Shown here: piece by piece, positions 35,181-47,085 of the stretch
Layout of the letters: the number at the start of each line of letters is the position of its first letter
Numbering within the stretch: the first letter of the stretch is position 1
NCBI GenBank assembly: GCA_003693705.1
Contig: RBZT01000352.1
Span: forward strand, 1 to 47,198
Direction of reading: 5' to 3'
Source of the DNA: Polymyxa betae A26-41
Lineage: Eukaryota > Protista > Endomyxa: Phytomyxea
Length of the DNA: 47,198 nt
Translations under genes and position numbers: made by a program
The notes under the pieces: model-generated
Database searches by the model: none
Seen by the model: only the letters and a program-made list of their open reading frames with translations
What the model was told of the DNA's origin: nothing

Positions 35181-36305
35181 ATGAAAAAAGCTAAACAGCA
35201 GATAAATGGGTGCAAAGCTTGCAGAATGGTAAGTTGTTTGCAGGAAACCTGTGAAACAGATCGCAAACAAACAGTATGAATGGCGCGAATTCGCTCCAAA
35301 AACGATCGGTGTATCTACGCTCAACGAATTGAATCGAGCGATATCGCCCGCCTGATTCATCCAGGAAACCATCCCAACATGTTTTATCACGATAACAGAC
35401 GACTACATAGGTAGTGCTTCGACTGCCAGTGGTTCAGTATTATATATGGTCAGGCAAAGAATAAACGAGCTGGGTTAAACGGACCGTCAAACCAAAATAC
35501 GTATATGAATAATCTCAACATTTGAAGTTGAATTGCAGGAACGTTCGACCTGTGGTGAGGACCCTTCGTTCACGTGTGGCCCGAAGTTCACCTTCGGTGT
35601 TGCTTCGAAACATCTTCATGATTTGTTCATTCGCATTTTGCAGTATATCGTCAGATATAAGTTCAAACGAGCCGGGATGTCGTCCAAGATTGAATCTCGA
35701 TTGACCGAGGAGGATCGCGAATTCTCTAAGCAGAAGGGCATACCAGAAAATGATCGCTATGGTCAGGATCTTCTAACAATGGTCAACGTTATTGTGCCAG
35801 GGTTAGCCTTCCATGGCGCTTTTCTGATATTTCTAACTTAGACGCTATTAGGTATGCTCAGAAGATTGATCTGGATCTACCACGAAGCGAGATCGTTAAC
35901 AGCATCAAGAAAGAACTGAAACTGGCAGGTATCAGCGACAGGTAGCCCTGATACGAACAATCAGTTTTGATCACTTACATTTTTGAAAGCTTGAGTAAAA
36001 ACGATATTGGCAAGACTTTGGAAAAGTATAAGAACGCCACACCCAATCAAGAATACCTCGAGAAGCTTCGCCCGCCTCCGTCGATCAACTACAATTTGCA
36101 TCCGGTAGACGAAGCAGCGCCCGAAGAGGACAACGAAGACGAGGTCATCAACGAAGACGAGATCAACGACCCCGATTACTTTCCAGGCATGGAGGAGAGC
36201 GAACCAATCGACACGACCGAGGCTATCCCGGGACAAGAACCTGGAGAATATCCAGGAGATGAACTCCCCGATATTCCGCCCTTAAGAACAAGTAAGAATG
36301 ACTGA
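35181..36305 (+). CDS. Hypothetical multi-exon protein with acidic/Pro-rich C-terminus
   Basis: Exon-like segments with ~50-nt GT-AG introns ending in ORF 35967-36305; family not recognised and 5' exons uncertain. Confidence 0.45.
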
Positions 36306-36529
36306 TGTACCCATCCTTCTCTTTCTCGTCATTTTGTTGAGGGGCTATGTAACATTAGTACATTACATCTCTTATAAAACCCTTTTTTTTTCAAAATTTA
36401 TTCAATAAATTCGACTTGTCTGCATTGCCATTTGAGCCCAGATTAGAATCTCCGTGAAGTGTGATCGGGCCATAGGGGGAACCTGCACCTACAGTAGAGC
36501 ATCTCTTACCAATCCGGCTGCATTTTGTC

Positions 36530-37616
36530 ATGGTCTCAGCAATAAGGGACCCGTTCGATGCCGCCTGGGTAATTAATCTATCAGCTTTGTTTGTTAATAT
36601 GTATCAATACTTCAATCTAGCTGGAGGCGATGCCAGTTCCGGCTCAGCATTGGCTCCTGAATGTTGCCACCACCGTGACGCAGACACTCGAAGCCGATGC
36701 TGCATATTGGAGGTCCATTCGAGACATCCTCGCGAAGGCAAATGCTGCCCCTGCGAGCGTCGTCGAAGGGGCCGTGCTCAGCAATGAGGGCGTTGCTTCG
36801 CTGATTGTTCCAGACCCATCAGAGCCGGGATCGTCTGAAACCATCCTAAATGGGTCCACAACAAATGACTCTGAGGCGTTTCCGGCGGATTCGGTGGTCA
36901 ACCAGAGCGGATTGGAATCAACTAGAGAGGAGCAGGAATTGAACCGGATGGAAAGCGCAGTTCAGACGCTTAATTATTTAACGTTGGACAGACCAAGATT
37001 TAGGCGCGAGAAGCTTGGAGCTGGAAAGAAATGTGTTGTTAGTCTCGGCTGCTCTGCTAATGTCGTCAGCAAAGCGCGAGCGCAAACGTCGCCATCAATG
37101 GCCATGTTGATGAAAGAGGCATCCCAGCGACGATCGGCACGAAGAAGTATCACTTCCGGGAAAGAAGGCGAAGTTGAAAAAGCTGCCTCAGAGAGAGAAG
37201 ACGAAGTTCAAAAAGGTGTCTTACGAGAGAGAGAAGGTGAAGCTGAAAGCGCTCCAGCGCCCGCAGTAGTATCCGATATTAGCAGTGATCGAAACTCTGA
37301 ACAAAATCTCTCTGGAGATGAAAATTTATTGACTGAGACACCTATCGAGATTCAAATCGAACAGCGAGAACCCGGAATGGAGAAAAAAACAGAAACCCCA
37401 GAAGGACAATCAAAAATTCTGAACGAATTGCTCGAATGCAGTCATGGCGAATCGTCAGCGGCTGTCCTGCCGAAGGCCCGCGTTTCTGGCGAGCAGCCTG
37501 ATCAAGACATCGTCAGAGAAGAGCCAGCCGCCTGCCTTCATTGCAGCTGCGTCTGCTTCCGGGACAATCCCTATAGAAAAGGTCGATGCTCTAATTGCTT
37601 CCATAAACACGAATAG
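36530..37616 (+). CDS. Mostly disordered protein with CPI-like motif and C-terminal Cys/His finger
   Basis: MVSAIRDPFDAAW|LEAMPVP.. with one short intron; LNYLTLDRPRFRREKL; terminal CLHCSCVCFRDNPYRKGRCSNCFHKHE. Confidence 0.7.
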
Positions 37617-37671
37617 ACCATTTGAAGTTTCCACAAAATCGGAATCACAGTCGGAGCTTTGGCAAGCTGTG

Positions 37672-38330
37672 ATGGCTGCGCGTCGCAGCGTCATGTGAGA
37701 TCCCTTACAAATCTCATCCCATCTGAAGTTCTTTCTTTCGCAAGTAAACGAGAAATTTTTGAATCAGAAGGCGCCAGCAGCGGAGGACTGGGTTTGTTTC
37801 TCGGCGCCACGGCGTGCTCGTATTTGCAATCGTCTGCAGCCCGTTCGCTGCAGCAGCAGCCAGACGGCGTCGCTCCCGGCCCGACCATGGACGACGACCT
37901 ACTGCGAATGTCGCAGGACGTTCGGCATCTGGCTCCCGCCCCGATACCGGCCCGGGTTCGTAGCCGAGACATCCCTCCTGTGCCTCAGTTCTCCAATGAT
38001 CTAGACACGTATATCCATAGTCGTTTTAATTTCTGATGGTAATTGGTTTCTGTTTTTCAGGCAGATATTGAAACAAATCGAGAAGAAACCGCGCCTGCAA
38101 TCCGGATTCATAAAAGAATGGACGCCGCCGTCTCTCAGCCGGCTTTTGAAATTGGCTCCTCCTAGAAGCAGACACGATTCTCCTCGTGCATCGTTAGGAA
38201 GAGAGTCGGTGATCTGATAGGGCGTGGCTTTATTTATTGATTGTTTTTGCAGGCGGTTAATCAGCAGTCTTTCAGAGAGATCGAATGCGATATTGAGGAA
38301 TTCGACCAATCGCCAGGCGAAGAGTTCTGA
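37672..38330 (+). CDS. Hypothetical multi-exon protein
   Basis: MAARRSV|IKREIFESEG.. can be spliced through ORF 37659-38036 and later exons via GT-AG introns; 3' end uncertain. Confidence 0.4.
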
Positions 38331-38747
38331 TTGTTCGAAACCGCCATTCTCTCCTAGCTCCAAGATATCGCCCCCCAGATGCCCCATAAGACTCTCAGAA
38401 TCGGTCCAGTTTCGACCAAAGAATCTGATGCAGACCTCACTCAATAATTGTAATGGACCCAGCGCCTGTTCAACAACTGTCGTTTAGATATCACTTAAGT
38501 AATCCATGAATATTTATTGAATACATCAGCAAAGGCATCTTTATCACTTGCTGTGGTTTTGTCGCTTTTGATTAATCGGCAAAAGGCTCTGAAAAGCAAG
38601 TTTTAAAAGGACTCCTCAAGTCGTGAAAGGAATCGCTTTTAAAAAGATCAGTTATTTGGACATCAGAATCTAAACATCTCTCGTCAAATGTGACATCAGA
38701 AAGCTGGGTTTAGAAGCAGTTTGAATCCTCATCGTCCAAATAAAGTG

Positions 38748-38829
38748 CGCTTTGAGCGGGGATTGAACCCAAGACCTGCCCAAGCCATGGCCTGGCTTCA
38801 GCAGATTCGTCCATCCGGCCACTTCAAAC
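38748..38829 (-). pseudogene. tRNA-like Pol III remnant (tRNA pseudogene or SINE head)
   Basis: A-box-like TGGCCGGATGG (38811-38821) and B-box GGTTCAATCCC (38759-38769) with a T-arm-like stem; cloverleaf incomplete. Confidence 0.4.
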
Positions 38830-39307
38830 TATCTCCTATTGCCGCATCAGCATACCAACGAAATCCATCCTACAGGGCAGTCCTGTTGGCGTCAATTTGG
38901 TTCTCCATATCGATCGTATTGAAAGCAGCTGTTGCAATGGGGGCTTAAACAACGCTAGCCAGTAGTGATAGGTCGTGAACACATTTCAAGATGGTTTCGA
39001 TTGTCGATGATTTATCGGCCCACCAACATCAATTGATCGAATCTGCAGCTAAGCAGGATATTTTACATTCGGAGAACGACCCCGATCTCGGACCGGCCAC
39101 TTTGGCAGGGGATGGGGAACTGGCAGCTGCAACAGGGATATCACAGCTTTCAAAGCCAAATTTCAAAGGATGATACTCGAAATGATCTGAGAGGTTTTTG
39201 TGACGAGAAATAACAAGAAAGACTGTAAAGAGATCGAATCTATATTGATTACAAAGGAGGCAATTGCTTAGGTAATCGGCAATTATTATGTAAATTTATT
39301 TGAAAAC

Positions 39308-42300
39308 TCAACCCCAATGCATAAGATCGTCAACTTTTAAGTTGCGGTCATCAACGCGAAAGGGGACTGGGACTTCGTCCAGCGCATCGGCGCCAATTTG
39401 CTCAATTTGCCCGTTGCCGGCCTAATTTTCGCGTCAGTTTCACGATCAGAAGAAGGATTTAAATGCAACCTGCAATTCTTGCATTGCTCTCTGAGATAGC
39501 GACATAACTTTGAATGCATTTTCAGTTGGAACCGTATCAGTTGGAACCGTAGGGTCAACAATTATTCCAACAAGTGAACTTTCATCTTTCTGGAAAGAAT
39601 AAAACTCGCGTATGTCAATAGAAGACATATCCTAATCAAATTAGCACACGACAGACACAATGATAATGGTACAATACCGTGAACAGATGCGTTTGAATCC
39701 ATCCAAACTTTTTCAGATTATAACTTGCGATATAATTCTGATACCATTGCTCCGGAACTCCAGAGTTTGGAGGCAGGAAGAGCTACACACTCGATTCAGT
39801 GAGAGAGAAACAGGATATTATTCCCATACTCGCGTAACAGTGTGATTGCCATCTGGGTCAGTACCGCCAAAAAGAATCCCACGACTAATTAAATGATTCT
39901 CAGTGTTGTCCTGAACACCCGGATTGCTGAAAGGTCCCGTTAGCTGACAATCTGAAGCATTTCCCATCGGATACCTTAGAAATGTTTCAACTAGCTTTGT
40001 GATAGTTCGACCGTTGAGTGTCTGACCCTTAACGAAGCTCTTGGGATCCACAGCGCTGCTTTTCACTAAGCTAGCGGCTTTCTTGGTTGCGGAGCTCTGC
40101 TCAGGCAGCAATGATCGGTTGCTTGTGCATTTTCCAGAAGCTAGTTCTCGATCCGCAGCGCTGCTTTTCAAAATGCTAGCGGCTTTGTTTTTAACTGAGC
40201 TCTTCTCAGGCTGTAATGATCGACTCTCTATGATTTTCTCGTCAGCTGGCTCTCGCTTCTGAGAACGCCGAGATGAAAGATTTTTGAAAAATGAATCGAC
40301 GGCCCTCGGAACCACAGTTTCAGCAACCAAAGGTTGATTAACCGGATTTGATACTGTCCTGGTTGGCTCAATATTCGTGGAAAGCAATGGCTTACTCCCC
40401 GTAAAGACACTCTCTACAGGGGGTGCTATTTTTTTAGCCAACATCTTCTTGGGAGCCGGTTTCGTGATGGCAGGCTCAGACTCTTGCACACCTGATGCCA
40501 GATCAAATTCATCAGTTTGAATACTTTCGTTTGTTGGTTCGGTGGAGATAGAATTGATATAAGCTGAAAGAACCTCTTGCGCAATAACGCGTTTGTCCAT
40601 AGACATTGTTCGAGAACTGTAACTGGCTTCAACATTTGAGAAGAATGCGTTGAGCTGCTGCAAAGCGTTTCGCTCGAGAATCAGCGATCTGGAAACGGGA
40701 ACCCGTTGTTGTTGATGAGCGCGATGATCAACAAGCTTGATTTGCAAGCGCTCGTCAGAGAAGCAGTGCTCAGCATGCTCGACACGATACGAACTGCTGG
40801 AATGCTTTTGTAAAGCATCATTAGGGGTGGCGCAGTCCTGACAACGTATTAGATGTAAGCTGTGCAGTACAGTTCATCAAGCTTCTAGACCTGGCATCCT
40901 TTGAAATATCCATCTGCGGCTATAGAAAAGACGTGGGGTTTGCCGCTGTCGAAAGGAGTAACAATGCACAGACATGGCCTTTGACTGACATGATCAAGTC
41001 CAAATTTCTGGTAGAATTCGAAACATGACAGTGAGCAGTCCTAAAGCTAGTCAATACATTTCTGGGCTTGTAGCCGATATACCAACCGCGGGGGCCTTGC
41101 GAATCCATCCCAAAACCACCAAGTTTGATCTGTTCGTTCTTATGTAATCATCTAAAGTATTAGGTTGCGCTGGAAGGTAGAGCTGGAAACCGATATCAAT
41201 GGTTCGCAAAAAAACACGAAGATGTCACACCTGCGTAATGACGAAATGGCTATCAGATTCCATGTTACCAAGAAGATAGCCAACAGTATCGTTATCCGTA
41301 ATCTTCCTATAAAACCCAGTTTTAACTAATCCATTCGGAGCAACGATAATGCGATTTAGATACCTTGCAAATGTATGAGGTAGATCAAAAGGGAAGATTA
41401 ACTCAATAACAGGATCAATACTGGGGGAAGGAAAACTTAAAGAGACTGAAGGCTGAAAGTCGTCAGTTTCATCCATAATAGAATCAATACTGGGAGAAGG
41501 AAAACGTAAAGAGACTGAAGGCTGAAAGTCGTCAATTTCATCCATAATAGAATCAATACAGGGAGAAGGAAAACGTAAAGAGACTGAGTCAACACTAGAA
41601 GAAGGCTGAAAGTCGTCAGTTTCATCCATATCAGAAGCAGGAGATTCTATTGGACGTGATCTTTCAAAAGCATCCGGAACGTTTTCACCTTTTAAACTTG
41701 CTTCAACATTGCCCGTTAGAATTTGTTCGCCAGCTTCACCAATCAAGCCTTGGCCTATTTCACTAGAGTCTGAAGCAATTTCTGTTCTAGATGACTGTTG
41801 GATATCACTTAACATTTCTTCGAAAACAGGCTTTTCTTGAACTTTGAAATCAGGGACTTGTTCGACGGCGTCAACAACGAGGAAATCCCCCACTTCATCA
41901 AAATTCTCTGCTCTTTGAAGCCCATCTTGAATTCTGCGATCATGGACTTGAACAACTGAGTCGACACCGGAGCCTTCCTCAGCTTCCTCAACATCGTTAG
42001 AATAAGAAACAGAGCTTCCCTCCAGTGGTGATTGTTCGATGACATCAAGAACCTGTGCTTGTAGGGTGTCCTGTCTTTGAGACCATCCTTGGACTTCGTA
42101 ATCAGAGAATTCGTCAGCTGCGTCATGAAAGGACTCTTCCTCAACCTCACTGGAATGCGAAGCGGAATTTTCTTCCCGTGACGATTGTTCGGTAGCACCA
42201 ACAATCTCCACACGTTCAAATCGCTTCTCATCGTTAAGTGACGGAATTGGTTCGATTGCGGGCCTATCCTTCAAAGAATCGGTGCCATTGTGATGCGATT

Positions 42301-45300
42301 CATCGTCAGAAACAGCAACGTAGTGGGAAGTTAAAAAAGGTCCAAGCCAATCAGGATTCTCATCCGCAGTAGTATTCTTGGAAGACTCACTGACAGTATA
42401 CGATTTCATCACATGACTTGACAAATCCTGAGCAGAGCGGTCCTCAGTAATAGAATCATCAACAATGAGTCCAGAAACATCCTGAGCACAGCTATCAACA
42501 GCAGCAGAGGTTGTCGCCAAACCACTTCTGACGATCTAGAAAGATAATAAACATAATAGTAGCGAGAAGATCCATACAGCTGACCTTCTGATTCCGGTTG
42601 GAATGATGACTACGGTTCTTTCCAGTCCTCTTCATAGCGTTATGATTGGCGACTGAGACCTGAGGAGGCTTCAATTTAGTCAGCTGCCGCTCAATCAAAT
42701 GTAGTTGAGATTCGAGCTGCTGCTTCAGCCTGTTTAATGAGGCCTCTTTCCCACGTTCGACTTTCTTAGACTTTGTCAACCAATCTTTGACCAAGGTTGC
42801 CGAACGAGAAGCTTCCAGCTTGTTATTGATTCCCGAAATCTGACTTTTGAGCTCATTGGCTCGGGTTTCCAAAACACCGATTTCCTTGTGTATCGAAACG
42901 GACGCATTTTCGAGGCAATCAGCGACTATTACGCTGATATCGTCTATCGAATCGTCCACAGAATCCTCAGGCGAAATGGAATTTACAGTTGCCGCGGTGT
43001 GCACGTCGCTCATAGCATTGATAGTAGGGGATTTTTGAGGAGTTTCAGCATTATCATTAATGGCATTATTTACGGTAACATCGTCAACGGAACTGGAAGG
43101 GGCTTTAAGCACATCATTCACAGCATTGTCAGCAGGGTCTTGAACAATTTCAGTGTTGCCACGCACGGCGAGATTTATGGCAACAACGTCTGTAAGATCC
43201 TGCATTGACTCCAGAGCGGAGCTGGGATTTGAAGTAGAGGCTTTGTGCACGCCGCTCATAGCACTGGAATCCTGAGAAACCTCCGCATTATCATCAATTG
43301 CTGTATTTACGGCAGCAGCGTCTGTCAGGTTGTCCGTAGCAGCCGGAGCGGAGCTGAGATTAACATAAAAGGCCTTGTGCATATCATCCAATAATTCGTC
43401 AGAAGGAGAATCTTGGGAAATTTTGTTCTTATCATCCAAGACATCAGGTACAGAAAAAGCTCGAGCCATTCGATTTGGGGCATCATCATCTGCCCAGGTA
43501 ACACGTTTCTTGGTTTTAGAAGTAGATGGGGCATCTAGAGATTTGGTCTTTTGCGACGAATTACTTCTGACGCCAGAAAACGAGGCATTTTCAGCGGTGC
43601 GGTAATCAACAACTTTGCATTCCAATGTTCTACTCGTAGCATAACGTTGAGCAGCCTGGTATTCTGAAACGTTGTGATCAACCGAATGCTTGTGCGAAAC
43701 ATTAAACGGCAACTTGCATATCTACGTCAAGGTCAGATTGCCAGAGCTTTACAAGGATATTAAGTCAAACCATGCAATTCTTCAACCCCTCTTCAGTCAG
43801 TGAAAAACACTGGACATCACGATGTTTAGGATCAAGAGCAAAGCCAAAAAATGAGCTCCGCGATTTCTGGAATTCATACTGTCTATGAAGATCACTATGT
43901 GACCAGGCACACCCCTAAGCAAAATTGAATAAAAAAATACTGCACGGTTACTGAAGTAATATAATAACATTGTCGACTTTACGGACCCATCCGAGAACGG
44001 ATAGCTTGCGAGTTTTCGCGTAATTAAGAGTACCAAAACTGGAAACCTGGTTTGAATTATGTTTTGCAGATTGTGGGGGAAGGTATAGCTTGAAAGAAAG
44101 AAATCAGCAACAGCGCGACGGGCAGAACCCAGTAGGATACCTCGCTGATAACATAGCGCCCGTCAGATTGCATTTTACCAAGAAGATACCCAATGGTCTG
44201 ATAATCATGTTCGTCAACAACACTGGCGAAAGTTGAGTTGACTTCAAGGTGCCGCGATGGTATAAATACCTAAAAAACGCCCGCAGTGAGCTACATGGAA
44301 CCACGATTTCGCGGGAATCGGTCAGTTTCGTTTGCAGATTTCGACCAATGAGACAATGATTGGCATAGTGATAAAGATCCGTATCATCGGGATGCTTGTG
44401 ATAAGAGCCACCAAAATCCTTTTTGCAAACCTGTCCCACAATATACAACTGAAGTTTAAACAGCAAAAAAAGGCAAACCTGGCAGGTTTGCAATCCCTTT
44501 CTAGTTAGAGCGAAAACCCGGTTCTTGGTGGATTTACGATCAACAAGGATACCAATAGCGGCGCTTTCTAATTTCTGGAATTCATACTGAATATGAATAT
44601 CATCCCAAGAGGGGAAACAATCCTAAGACTCGTTGATCAAAATGGATTGCTCAAACAGGAATTGAATTAACCCCAGAAGAATCGACGCGAATCCATCCCA
44701 AGATGACCCGGTTCATACTGTTTGAGTAATCAAGCGATTCCACATTTATCACTCCATTTTCACCAAATACCGCAGACTGAGGAGGGATGTATAACTACAG
44801 ATGGACGTCAGTAAATCGAGAAGTGAACTGGTTACCATACTTCACTGATGACATGTTGACCGTGAGAGTTTCGCTCCCGATCACCAACCAGATACCCAAT
44901 GGTATCAAAGTCATCGCAGTCGTTAATTGCCCTTTGCAACTTTCAGCAACTTACAACAGCAAGTTGAGATAATACTTCAAGAATGTATGTGCTAGATCAA
45001 ATGGACAAAACACTTCATTGACCCGATCAACTTGATATATGAATGCAGACTTCCTTAAGGCCGGTGTCTCCAAAAGCTTTGATTTGTTCTTTGACAACTG
45101 GCCTGCATCATCCGATGTTTCTTGGTAAGGAAACTCTTCAATATTTTCAACAGCGGCAGACTTCTTCATATCAGAAGAATCCAAAAATGGTGATGTTTCT
45201 TTTGGCGATTGCGATACGTCATGTTTCATCTCTTTCATAGGAAATTCTCCTGTAACCGCATCAGCCGCATGCTTCGCAACGGAGGCATTCTTGTCGAGAG

Positions 45301-46306
45301 CTGTCTTATGAATGGATGACTTTTCCGTCAGAGGTTGCTGTGTTTCATTCAGTACTTCTTCCTTTGAAAGCTCCTCCTTTGGAAATTTCTCCGCAAAATC
45401 TTGAGAGGAGAGATCATCATCAGGTGCCGAAATTGAAAATTTGGAAAAGAAACGTTCGTTGATATTTTCGGCAGCATCAGCAGTAAATGTGACGTCAACG
45501 GGTTTCATAGGCGGCGTTCTCGCCGTTTTGACAGCATGAATTGGATGTTGCAAAGCAGCATTATTCTGAACCATTTTTCCATTGGATTTCTTAGCGAGAT
45601 CGCCAACAGGAGCCTGTTGGACCTCAGAATATCCGACTTCATTCTTTTTTCGCAATGTAACATTCCCAGCTCTCGATGACTGACTGACAGACAGATTAAC
45701 TGGACCTGGTACTTGTCTGTCATATTGACGGAGCGTGTCCCAATCCGAAGGACCACGATGGTCTGTGCCGAATCCATCACGATCGGCATCCGATCTGCTG
45801 CTCGAAGCGATGGGAGCTTGTCCGTATTGATGATGGCTGTAGGTGGACCGACCGTCATGGACAGATCTGCTATCCGAAGAAACGGCAGCGCGTCTATGAT
45901 CATTATGATGGCCATAAGCGGACCAACCACCCTGGACATGATCATTATAAGGGCCGAGGCTGCGCCTCTCCTGTCGACCTTCACCGCTAATGGTCTTGGC
46001 GACTCCGCTCCAGGACCAGAATGCAAATGCGATACAGCACGTGAATGCGCCGATGTAATTCTCGGCGGCCAGGAAGCCGACAAGAGCCGCTACGAGTATT
46101 ATACCCATAGTCATCGCCATGGTAACGCGACGTTCTTGCAAATGTCCCTCATTGGCATGGCCATCTCTTGGTCTGGCGTTCCCATTGTAAGCTGGATGCC
46201 GATTATTGTAGATGTTGTCTTGAGGATGATCATAATCATCGCTATGCGCCAGGGATATTAACACCAAGGCCGCCAAAGCGAACCACAATATCGACTTTGA
46301 CAACAT
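39308..46306 (-). CDS. ~2055-aa signal-peptide protein with four tandem catalytically degenerate AMSH-like JAMM/MPN domains
   Basis: 17 GT-AG introns of 44-57 nt (44932-44975, 44795-44840, 44623-44671, 44431-44478, 44223-44269, 44089-44140, 43915-43968, 43722-43770, 42536-42584, 41307-41363, 41183-41230, 41041-41086, 40838-40890, 39927-39974, 39783-39829, 39632-39677, 39422-39469) give one open frame of 6168 nt. N-terminus MLSKSILWFALAALVLISLAHS-DD. Each domain reads TxGYLxG..VI..LYxPxQ..LGW[IV]..SxxD..F.LT..G...C...HKH...LxxKxxDxR, like the AMSH JAMM domain. Confidence 0.85.
40010..40226 (-). repeat. Two ~105-bp coding repeats in linker 3-4
   Basis: RSLQPEKSSVKNKAASILKSSAAD / RSLLPEQSSATKKAASLVKSSAVD. 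Confidence 0.8.
41408..41629 (-). repeat. Three ~69-bp coding tandem repeats
   Basis: MDE[TI]DDFQPSVSL[RS]FPSP[SC]IDSI three times, near-identical at DNA level; the first unit has 15 extra bp. Confidence 0.9.
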
Positions 46307-46612
46307 AACTTACAGATGCAGAGGGTTTTTGGAACTGGCAATCTCAAAGGAGTATGGCGTTTAATGACCAAAACCGACGATGAGTCTAGTCGGTCCGATG
46401 ACCCTTTCCAAGTCCGGGGTGATATCTTGCTATTGGAATGATTCCGAAGATCGATCGATATCATTGACTTGACGATTTCGTTGGGCACCAAAATACGCTG
46501 TCATCCTGCATGTCTGGCTTCATACTGACAGTACAGAAATAGATTCCAACCACTTGAGCGTAGCATTCGGCAGATGAAAACTTCAATATAATTATCCGAG
46601 CATATTGTTATA

Positions 46613-47044: not shown

Positions 47045-47085
47045 CCCTAGGGTAAAAACCCTAAAAACCCTAAACCCTAACCCCT
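47045..47085 (+). repeat. Degenerate telomere-like repeats
   Basis: ccctagggtaaaaaccctaaaaaccctaaaccctaacccct. Confidence 0.75.

Follow-up and report, generated by a model that had tools for sequence, protein, structure and literature searches.

AMSH-type deubiquitinases (DUBs) carry a JAMM domain, whose catalytic motif reads E-x(n)-HxH-x7-S-x2-D (PMC9313428). In plants, AMSH1 supports immunity (PMC11819993), a catalytically dead version of AMSH2, which has no MIT domain, suppresses flg22-triggered reactive oxygen species and pattern-triggered immunity, and the aphid effector Mp10 acts through AMSH (bioRxiv 10.1101/2024.11.15.622802). Here we analyzed a stretch of 47,198 nucleotides (nt), referred to as the window, from the genome of Polymyxa betae A26-41 (contig RBZT01000352.1), an obligate intracellular parasite of sugar-beet roots and vector of the rhizomania virus (PMC6328671). 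The window carries, on its minus strand, a gene encoding a protein of 2055 amino acids (aa) with four AMSH-derived JAMM domains, D1 to D4, which we call the quadruple-JAMM gene. Its domains resemble those of AMSH/STAMBP, AMSH-LP and Sst2 in their colinear JAMM with Ins-1, in the second zinc site of D1 and D2, and in introns placed as in the parasite’s own AMSH gene; like plant AMSH2, the protein lacks an MIT domain. Unlike all of these, it carries four copies per chain that have lost the catalytic Glu/HxH set, together with a signal-peptide-like start, a candidate membrane hairpin and long linkers.

The quadruple-JAMM gene is expressed as a spliced transcript

A preliminary description of this DNA, made from the letters alone, had joined many short open reading frames (ORFs) across 17 canonical introns into one frame of about 2055 aa. 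Both the coordinates and the open translation bear this out. The 17 introns placed by coordinate between the 18 exons are all GT-AG and 44-57 nt long, and the spliced exons make up 6168 nt, which is 2055 aa plus a stop, with no internal stop codon.

The junctions were also recovered in transcripts. Spliced contigs from three runs of two studies, placed on the region 39300-45290, show at least 15 junctions, those of introns 3-17, exactly where the introns were placed. The kind of run is unrecorded, but the splicing of the contigs shows the runs to be complementary DNA. In run X2, one contig of 6901 nt is enough to explain all 17 introns, although one contig does not prove one molecule. Its coordinates require that 187 nt be missing between 44424 and 44975, and since this equals introns 1-4 summed, introns 1-2 were removed as well. 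The 5’ end (45291-46306) lies outside the region on which the contigs were placed, and the X2 contig is long enough to extend to about 46420. In six runs, which include these three, the share of the region’s words was 0.80-0.81, with 0.810 expected for a transcript lacking the 17 introns; the raw-read run X7 contained no reads of P. betae. The quadruple-JAMM gene is real and is expressed as a spliced transcript. Two other readings were rejected: several separate genes, because of the one spliced contig and the open frame, and a pseudogene, for the same two reasons and because of the selection on the fold core described below.

Two further observations concern splicing. Intron 6 (44089-44140), which has an AAG acceptor and 50% GC, is retained in one contig of run X1; its retention would shift the frame within D2 and is compatible with either pre-mRNA or regulated retention. 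Directly before the start codon, at 46308-46313 on the minus strand, lies a perfect donor-like hexamer, and an intron beginning there would take out the signal peptide. The word share of 0.81 is closer to 17 introns (0.810) than to 18 (0.796), which is not decisive.

Introns and conserved positions point to the parasite’s own AMSH gene

Our genome searches covered the P. betae assembly (1001 contigs, 27,085,814 bases), in which the quadruple-JAMM gene lies on contig C55 and the one canonical AMSH gene, with MIT and JAB matches, on contig C220. All comparisons and searches were performed exon by exon or on in-frame read-throughs, with identity and z summed over exon groups and z taken against shuffles. 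Each of the four domains matched the P. betae AMSH JAMM (Table 1), and their boundaries and colinearity with it, first proposed from the letters, hold in this comparison. Moreover, four introns occupy identical positions, with phases 2,0,0,0, in all seven JAMM copies of the genome, AMSH included. These shared places and phases imply duplication at the DNA level from the parasite’s own AMSH gene, and indicate that D1-D4 arose from its exons. A host or horizontal origin was rejected, as the introns are common to the domains and the parasite’s AMSH. The only genome match of PF08969 (MIT, USP8_dimer) was the canonical gene on C220. Identity, introns and this single match thus agree with the original view of four tandem, AMSH-derived JAMM domains in a protein without MIT.

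Evidence from outside databases is weak but consistent with an AMSH origin. The PDB matches of a D1 half were all STAMBP or Sst2 (E 0.75-1.2, weak), a profile of four exons of the gene ranked AMSH-LP first (E 0.04), and ESM Atlas returned weak JAB-cluster leads for the D1 half (0.81-0.89) and none for the N-terminus. HMMER over 1.84 billion representatives gave two matches, of which the only credible one was a canonical MIT+JAB protein (E 3.9e-4). When ten of the exons were scanned against Pfam, no JAB match emerged, only sub-threshold chance matches. The HMMER match P0001, a cystatin repeat protein, was rejected as an artefact of cysteine composition, and botulinum toxin chains matched by the Ins-1 exon profile (E 0.66-4) were rejected as chance.

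Next to ancestry stands selection. Where two canonical AMSHs have the same residue, the domains are 40-50% identical to AMSH; where the two differ, identity falls to 13-26% (p 2e-5 to 0.025). Because the AMSH-conserved columns are retained preferentially, the fold is under selection. A selectively conserved fold core, together with a dead motif, identifies D1-D4 as predicted MPN- pseudo-DUBs.

The catalytic motif is lost and ubiquitin-contact features are graded

The complete JAMM motif is absent from 4/4 domains. At the Glu/His/His positions, D1 carries D/R/D, D2 Q/R/V, D3 D/R/A and D4 I/Q/H, so that D4 keeps one His; the motif Ser is kept in all four domains and the Asp in D1, D2 and D4. Given the loss of the Glu/HxH set, D1-D4 are all predicted to be catalytically inactive, as had been suggested. 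The Arg found at the first His position of D1-D3 could replace the zinc through a salt bridge to the retained acid.

Next, we compared the features involved in ubiquitin contact. The second, structural (Ins-2) zinc site, with ligand positions (H, C, HxH) taken from AMSH-LP, is whole in D1 and D2; D3 has only part of it and D4 lacks it. Ins-1 measures 28 residues in D1 and in D2, 20 in D3 and 22 in D4, versus 29-31 in AMSH. One of the aromatic residues with which AMSH-LP contacts the proximal ubiquitin is presumably Phe355. The other is Phe407 (bioRxiv 10.64898/2026.06.05.730370), and the second zinc site of AMSH-LP shapes the proximal-ubiquitin surface (PMC9313428). Both aromatic positions are kept only in D1 (F and Y). 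By these comparisons D1 retains most of the AMSH ubiquitin-contact features, D2 fewer, and D3 and D4 few.

A paralog with an intact motif lies beside the AMSH gene

The preliminary description considered a single protein and overlooked a paralog at C220:50506-52847, head-to-head with the canonical AMSH gene (647 aa and 8 introns in a gene model made without an RNA check). It consists of a signal peptide and hairpin, a JAMM domain that has the full motif and shares 75% identity with AMSH, and lastly one dead JAMM domain. The introns of the intact domain still align to the AMSH introns (58-73%), suggesting that this domain is a recent copy of, or a gene conversion from, the neighbouring AMSH gene. 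In a partitioned tree of four exon alignments (8 rows, none left out, short alignments, rooted on P0002), AMSH grouped with the intact domain (83) and the five dead domains grouped together (84). The dead domains have in common derived substitutions that AMSH does not show, and the second domain of the paralog falls with D1-D4. Profile searches of the assembly found no further copies beyond the quadruple-JAMM gene, the paralog and AMSH. These comparisons place the quadruple-JAMM gene in a family of two genes.

The paralog fits poly_jg323.t1 (616 aa mature; JAMM-like domains 186-368 and 392-566) in supplement 1 of PMC12503489. For its set, this structure-based secretome study applied SignalP6 and DeepTMHMM as filters and left out proteins >1000 aa, and its text makes no mention of JAMM or AMSH (PMC12503489). 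The 2055-aa protein was not treated there because it exceeds the cut-off. The paralog itself is a candidate for an active metallo-DUB, either exported or anchored, and arguably deserves as much interest as the quadruple-JAMM gene.

A further reading is a surface protein that faces the host and would reuse the JAMM fold to bind not ubiquitin chains but host proteins, or itself, without any AMSH mimicry. It would fit the preserved fold core, the drift of Ins-1 and of the positions that contact the substrate, which is most marked in D3 and D4, and the derived changes in the dead copies that are not present in AMSH. We consider it unlikely, since the second zinc site persists in D1 and D2. Moreover, the N-terminus shared by the family was recently joined, in the paralog, to an intact AMSH domain, and this links the family to ubiquitin.

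A hydrophobic hairpin probably anchors the protein in a membrane

Behind the signal-peptide-like start lies a bilobed hydrophobic segment. Lobe 1 (aa 61-81) reaches a Kyte-Doolittle (KD) hydropathy of 2.36 and lobe 2 (aa 85-103) of 1.52, with a loop of 3-4 residues between them. AlphaFold2, run on a two-sequence alignment, placed helices at 53-80 and 84-109, with a predicted local distance difference test of about 80 there and a predicted template modelling score (pTM) of 0.38. The signal peptide and hairpin segment is shared with the C220 paralog at 30% identity. With this conserved pair of hydrophobic helices behind the signal peptide, the protein is more probably anchored in a membrane than freely secreted. 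The earlier call of a secreted protein has to be revised here: the hairpin at aa 61-103, which had been overlooked, makes a membrane-bound form the probable one, with JAMM domains that may face either side.

This bears on the role first proposed, in which a soluble, freely secreted protein would trap K63 chains by avidity, with all four domains binding. The signal peptide, the four AMSH-derived domains and the passage of the paralog’s match through the filter against transmembrane (TM) segments agree with such a trap, D1 keeps most ubiquitin-contact features, and the hairpin might insert only after secretion. We nevertheless regard it as improbable, given 43 hydrophobic residues with KD up to 2.36 and the state of D3 and D4, whose Ins-1 is 20-22 residues instead of 29-31 and whose second zinc site is not complete; a four-fold K63 avidity trap is weakly supported.

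The hairpin also admits another topology. If only helix 1 were a true TM segment and helix 2 interfacial, the product would be a type I membrane protein with its four pseudo-JAMM domains in the parasite cytosol. There it could act as a membrane-tethered MPN- scaffold or regulator of the parasite’s own ubiquitin sorting through the endosomal sorting complexes required for transport (ESCRT), for example in phagocytosis or spore cleavage. Such a role has precedent in MPN- domains, which are known to serve as scaffolds next to MPN+ partners (PMC9313428). As a TM candidate, helix 1 is strong and helix 2 weak. Several features of the protein are also typical of the cytosol, namely its JAMM domains, its zinc-binding Cys/His, its coiled coil and its RVxF-like motif. 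This is the main alternative, and we judge it rather unlikely: the two-helix pattern with its 3-4 residue loop is conserved in both paralogs, poly_jg323.t1 was not called TM in the published pipeline, and the family is seemingly lineage-restricted and fast-evolving, unlike housekeeping sorting proteins.

A tentative model of a host-facing AMSH mimic

Phytomyxid plasmodia sit in the host cytoplasm and phagocytose it (PMC10953367). Our model suggests that the protein would enter the secretory path by its signal-peptide-like start, and that the hairpin would anchor it in the plasmodium surface or in the membrane of the host-parasite interface. A cleaved signal peptide followed by two membrane passes, or a hairpin inserted post-secretion, would leave the C-terminal 1950 residues outside the parasite. 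The JAMM chain would then stand on the outer, host-facing side as a tethered, dominant-negative mimic of AMSH. D1, and perhaps D2, would bind K63-ubiquitinated host proteins or AMSH partners without cutting, in competition with host AMSH; the long linkers would provide reach, and D3 and D4 may be weaker or repurposed binding modules. Probably jointly with the active paralog, the protein could thereby upset AMSH/ESCRT sorting in the host, or the way in which ubiquitin marks the surroundings of the parasite.

We put this host-facing, tethered, dominant-negative mimic forward as the reading we favour, tentatively and with somewhat less than even confidence. Several points weigh against it. In D2-D4, the positions for ubiquitin contact are poorly conserved. 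The number of N-glycosylation sequons shows no enrichment (21 observed, 17.4 expected) and does not discriminate. With a KD of 1.52, helix 2 is a marginal membrane segment; should it fail to span the membrane, the JAMM domains would face the parasite cytosol. The hairpin model was built on two sequences only (pTM 0.38), and the paralog is matched to poly_jg323.t1 only through its domain coordinates, with 9 aa of length left unaccounted for.

We also hypothesize, more doubtfully, that the two genes form an anchored effector pair facing the host cytosol. At the surface of the parasite, an active eraser and a multivalent dead decoy would together edit and mask K63 ubiquitin, and would work against host AMSH as a naturally occurring dominant-negative.

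The same phagocytic habit (PMC10953367) might instead place the protein in the membrane of the food vacuole (phagosome), facing engulfed host cytoplasm, in a family that handles host ubiquitinated material. Hairpin topology would put the C-terminus in the lumen. Since no sorting signal was identified and a dead enzyme would be of little use in digestion, we find this the most improbable of the locations considered.

Features along the protein and around the gene

Table 1 Features of the quadruple-JAMM gene in the window
Feature	Position	Strand	Evidence and remarks
Whole coding sequence	39308..46306	-	18 exons, 17 GT-AG introns, 2055 aa
Signal-peptide-like N-terminus, aa 1-22	46241..46306	-	AlphaFold2 helix 3-22; homologous segment in C220 paralog
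Bilobed hydrophobic hairpin, aa 61-103	45998..46126	-	KD hydropathy; AlphaFold2 helices; conserved in paralog
Hydrophilic spacer, aa ~104-428, probably disordered	45023..45997	-	Composition; no Pfam match
D1, predicted pseudo-JAMM, introns 1-4	44311..45022	-	37% to P. betae AMSH, z 18
D2, predicted pseudo-JAMM, introns 5-8	43599..44310	-	35% to P. betae AMSH, z 17
Long linker with intron 9, degenerate internal repeats, acidic stretch, three 23-aa repeats	41411..43598	-	
Coiled-coil-like heptads in long linker, aa ~999-1080	~42923-42680	-	
D3, predicted pseudo-JAMM, introns 10-13	40721..41410	-	34% to P. betae AMSH, z 12
Linker with 35-aa duplication (40045-40254)	40011..40720	-	
D4, predicted pseudo-JAMM, introns 14-17	39311..40010	-	29% to P. 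betae AMSH, z 14; most degenerate

The motif check of the 2055-aa protein found no PTAP, PPxY, YPxL or STAM-binding motif. An RVxF-like PP1-docking motif, which may be chance, lies in the linker just after D2 (aa ~804-808; ~43494-43508, minus strand). Downstream, a convergent multi-exon neighbour occupies 35660-39270 on the plus strand, with long low-complexity exons, a Cys-rich end in ORF 36630-37616 and no Pfam match. The X2 contig skips a plus-strand GT-AG intron at 39272-39325, which spans the stop codon of the quadruple-JAMM gene; the 3’ untranslated region of the neighbour overlaps the last exon of the gene in antisense. Two to three telomere-like T-rich/AGGG units were observed at ~47050-47082, near the contig end and some 750 bases upstream of the quadruple-JAMM gene.

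Comparison with known systems

The initial statement that no described protein has this architecture agrees with the searches run, which returned no homolog beyond canonical AMSH. Neither exon 1 nor the last D2 exon found a homolog in searches that were length-limited and are no proof of absence, and a metagenome scan with the C-terminal half of D1 gave no match. This suggests that the family is lineage-restricted, within searches limited by length and word and databases from which P. betae proteins are apparently absent. In the literature within reach of the search, which had few subscription papers and not the one on the P. betae annotation, we found neither a secreted or membrane-anchored AMSH-derived effector nor a tandem pseudo-JAMM protein, and no report of a eukaryotic parasite using JAMM pseudo-enzymes in the manner of the pair hypothesized above.

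Like the MPN- pseudo-DUBs Abraxas, Abro1, Rpn8, CSN6 and eIF3f, D1-D4 are dead MPN domains that probably serve as scaffolds or binders. Those proteins are single-domain subunits of conserved intracellular complexes, whereas D1-D4 are AMSH-derived, tandem and apparently lineage-restricted, and come with a signal peptide. A close relative is the C220 paralog, with the same signal peptide, hairpin, AMSH-derived domains and introns, but with two domains only, the first of which has an intact motif. At the level of how they work only, Chlamydia Cdu1 and the bilobed-hairpin Inc proteins offer an analogy, that of membrane-tethered domains which edit or bind ubiquitin where host and pathogen meet. Legionella LotA, a DUB effector of the vacuole membrane with two OTU domains (PMC9486567), offers another. 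All of these come from bacteria, which deliver them by secretion systems, and they are either cysteine proteases or non-enzymes; we claim no sequence relation between them and D1-D4.

P. betae lives mostly symptomless inside sugar-beet root cells. Pathogen DUB effectors and MPN- pseudo-DUBs are both known, and their combination here appears to be undescribed. The anatomy of the protein is solid and unusual, and an effector role, by analogy and from sequence, is plausible. In plants, AMSH has been demonstrated to be the target of an effector, and immunity is suppressed by AMSH2 once it has been engineered to be dead. A protein of natural origin that holds four dead AMSH domains on one tether, and that has an active sibling, would offer a direct, testable route from plasmodiophorid biotrophy to the control of host ubiquitin and ESCRT.

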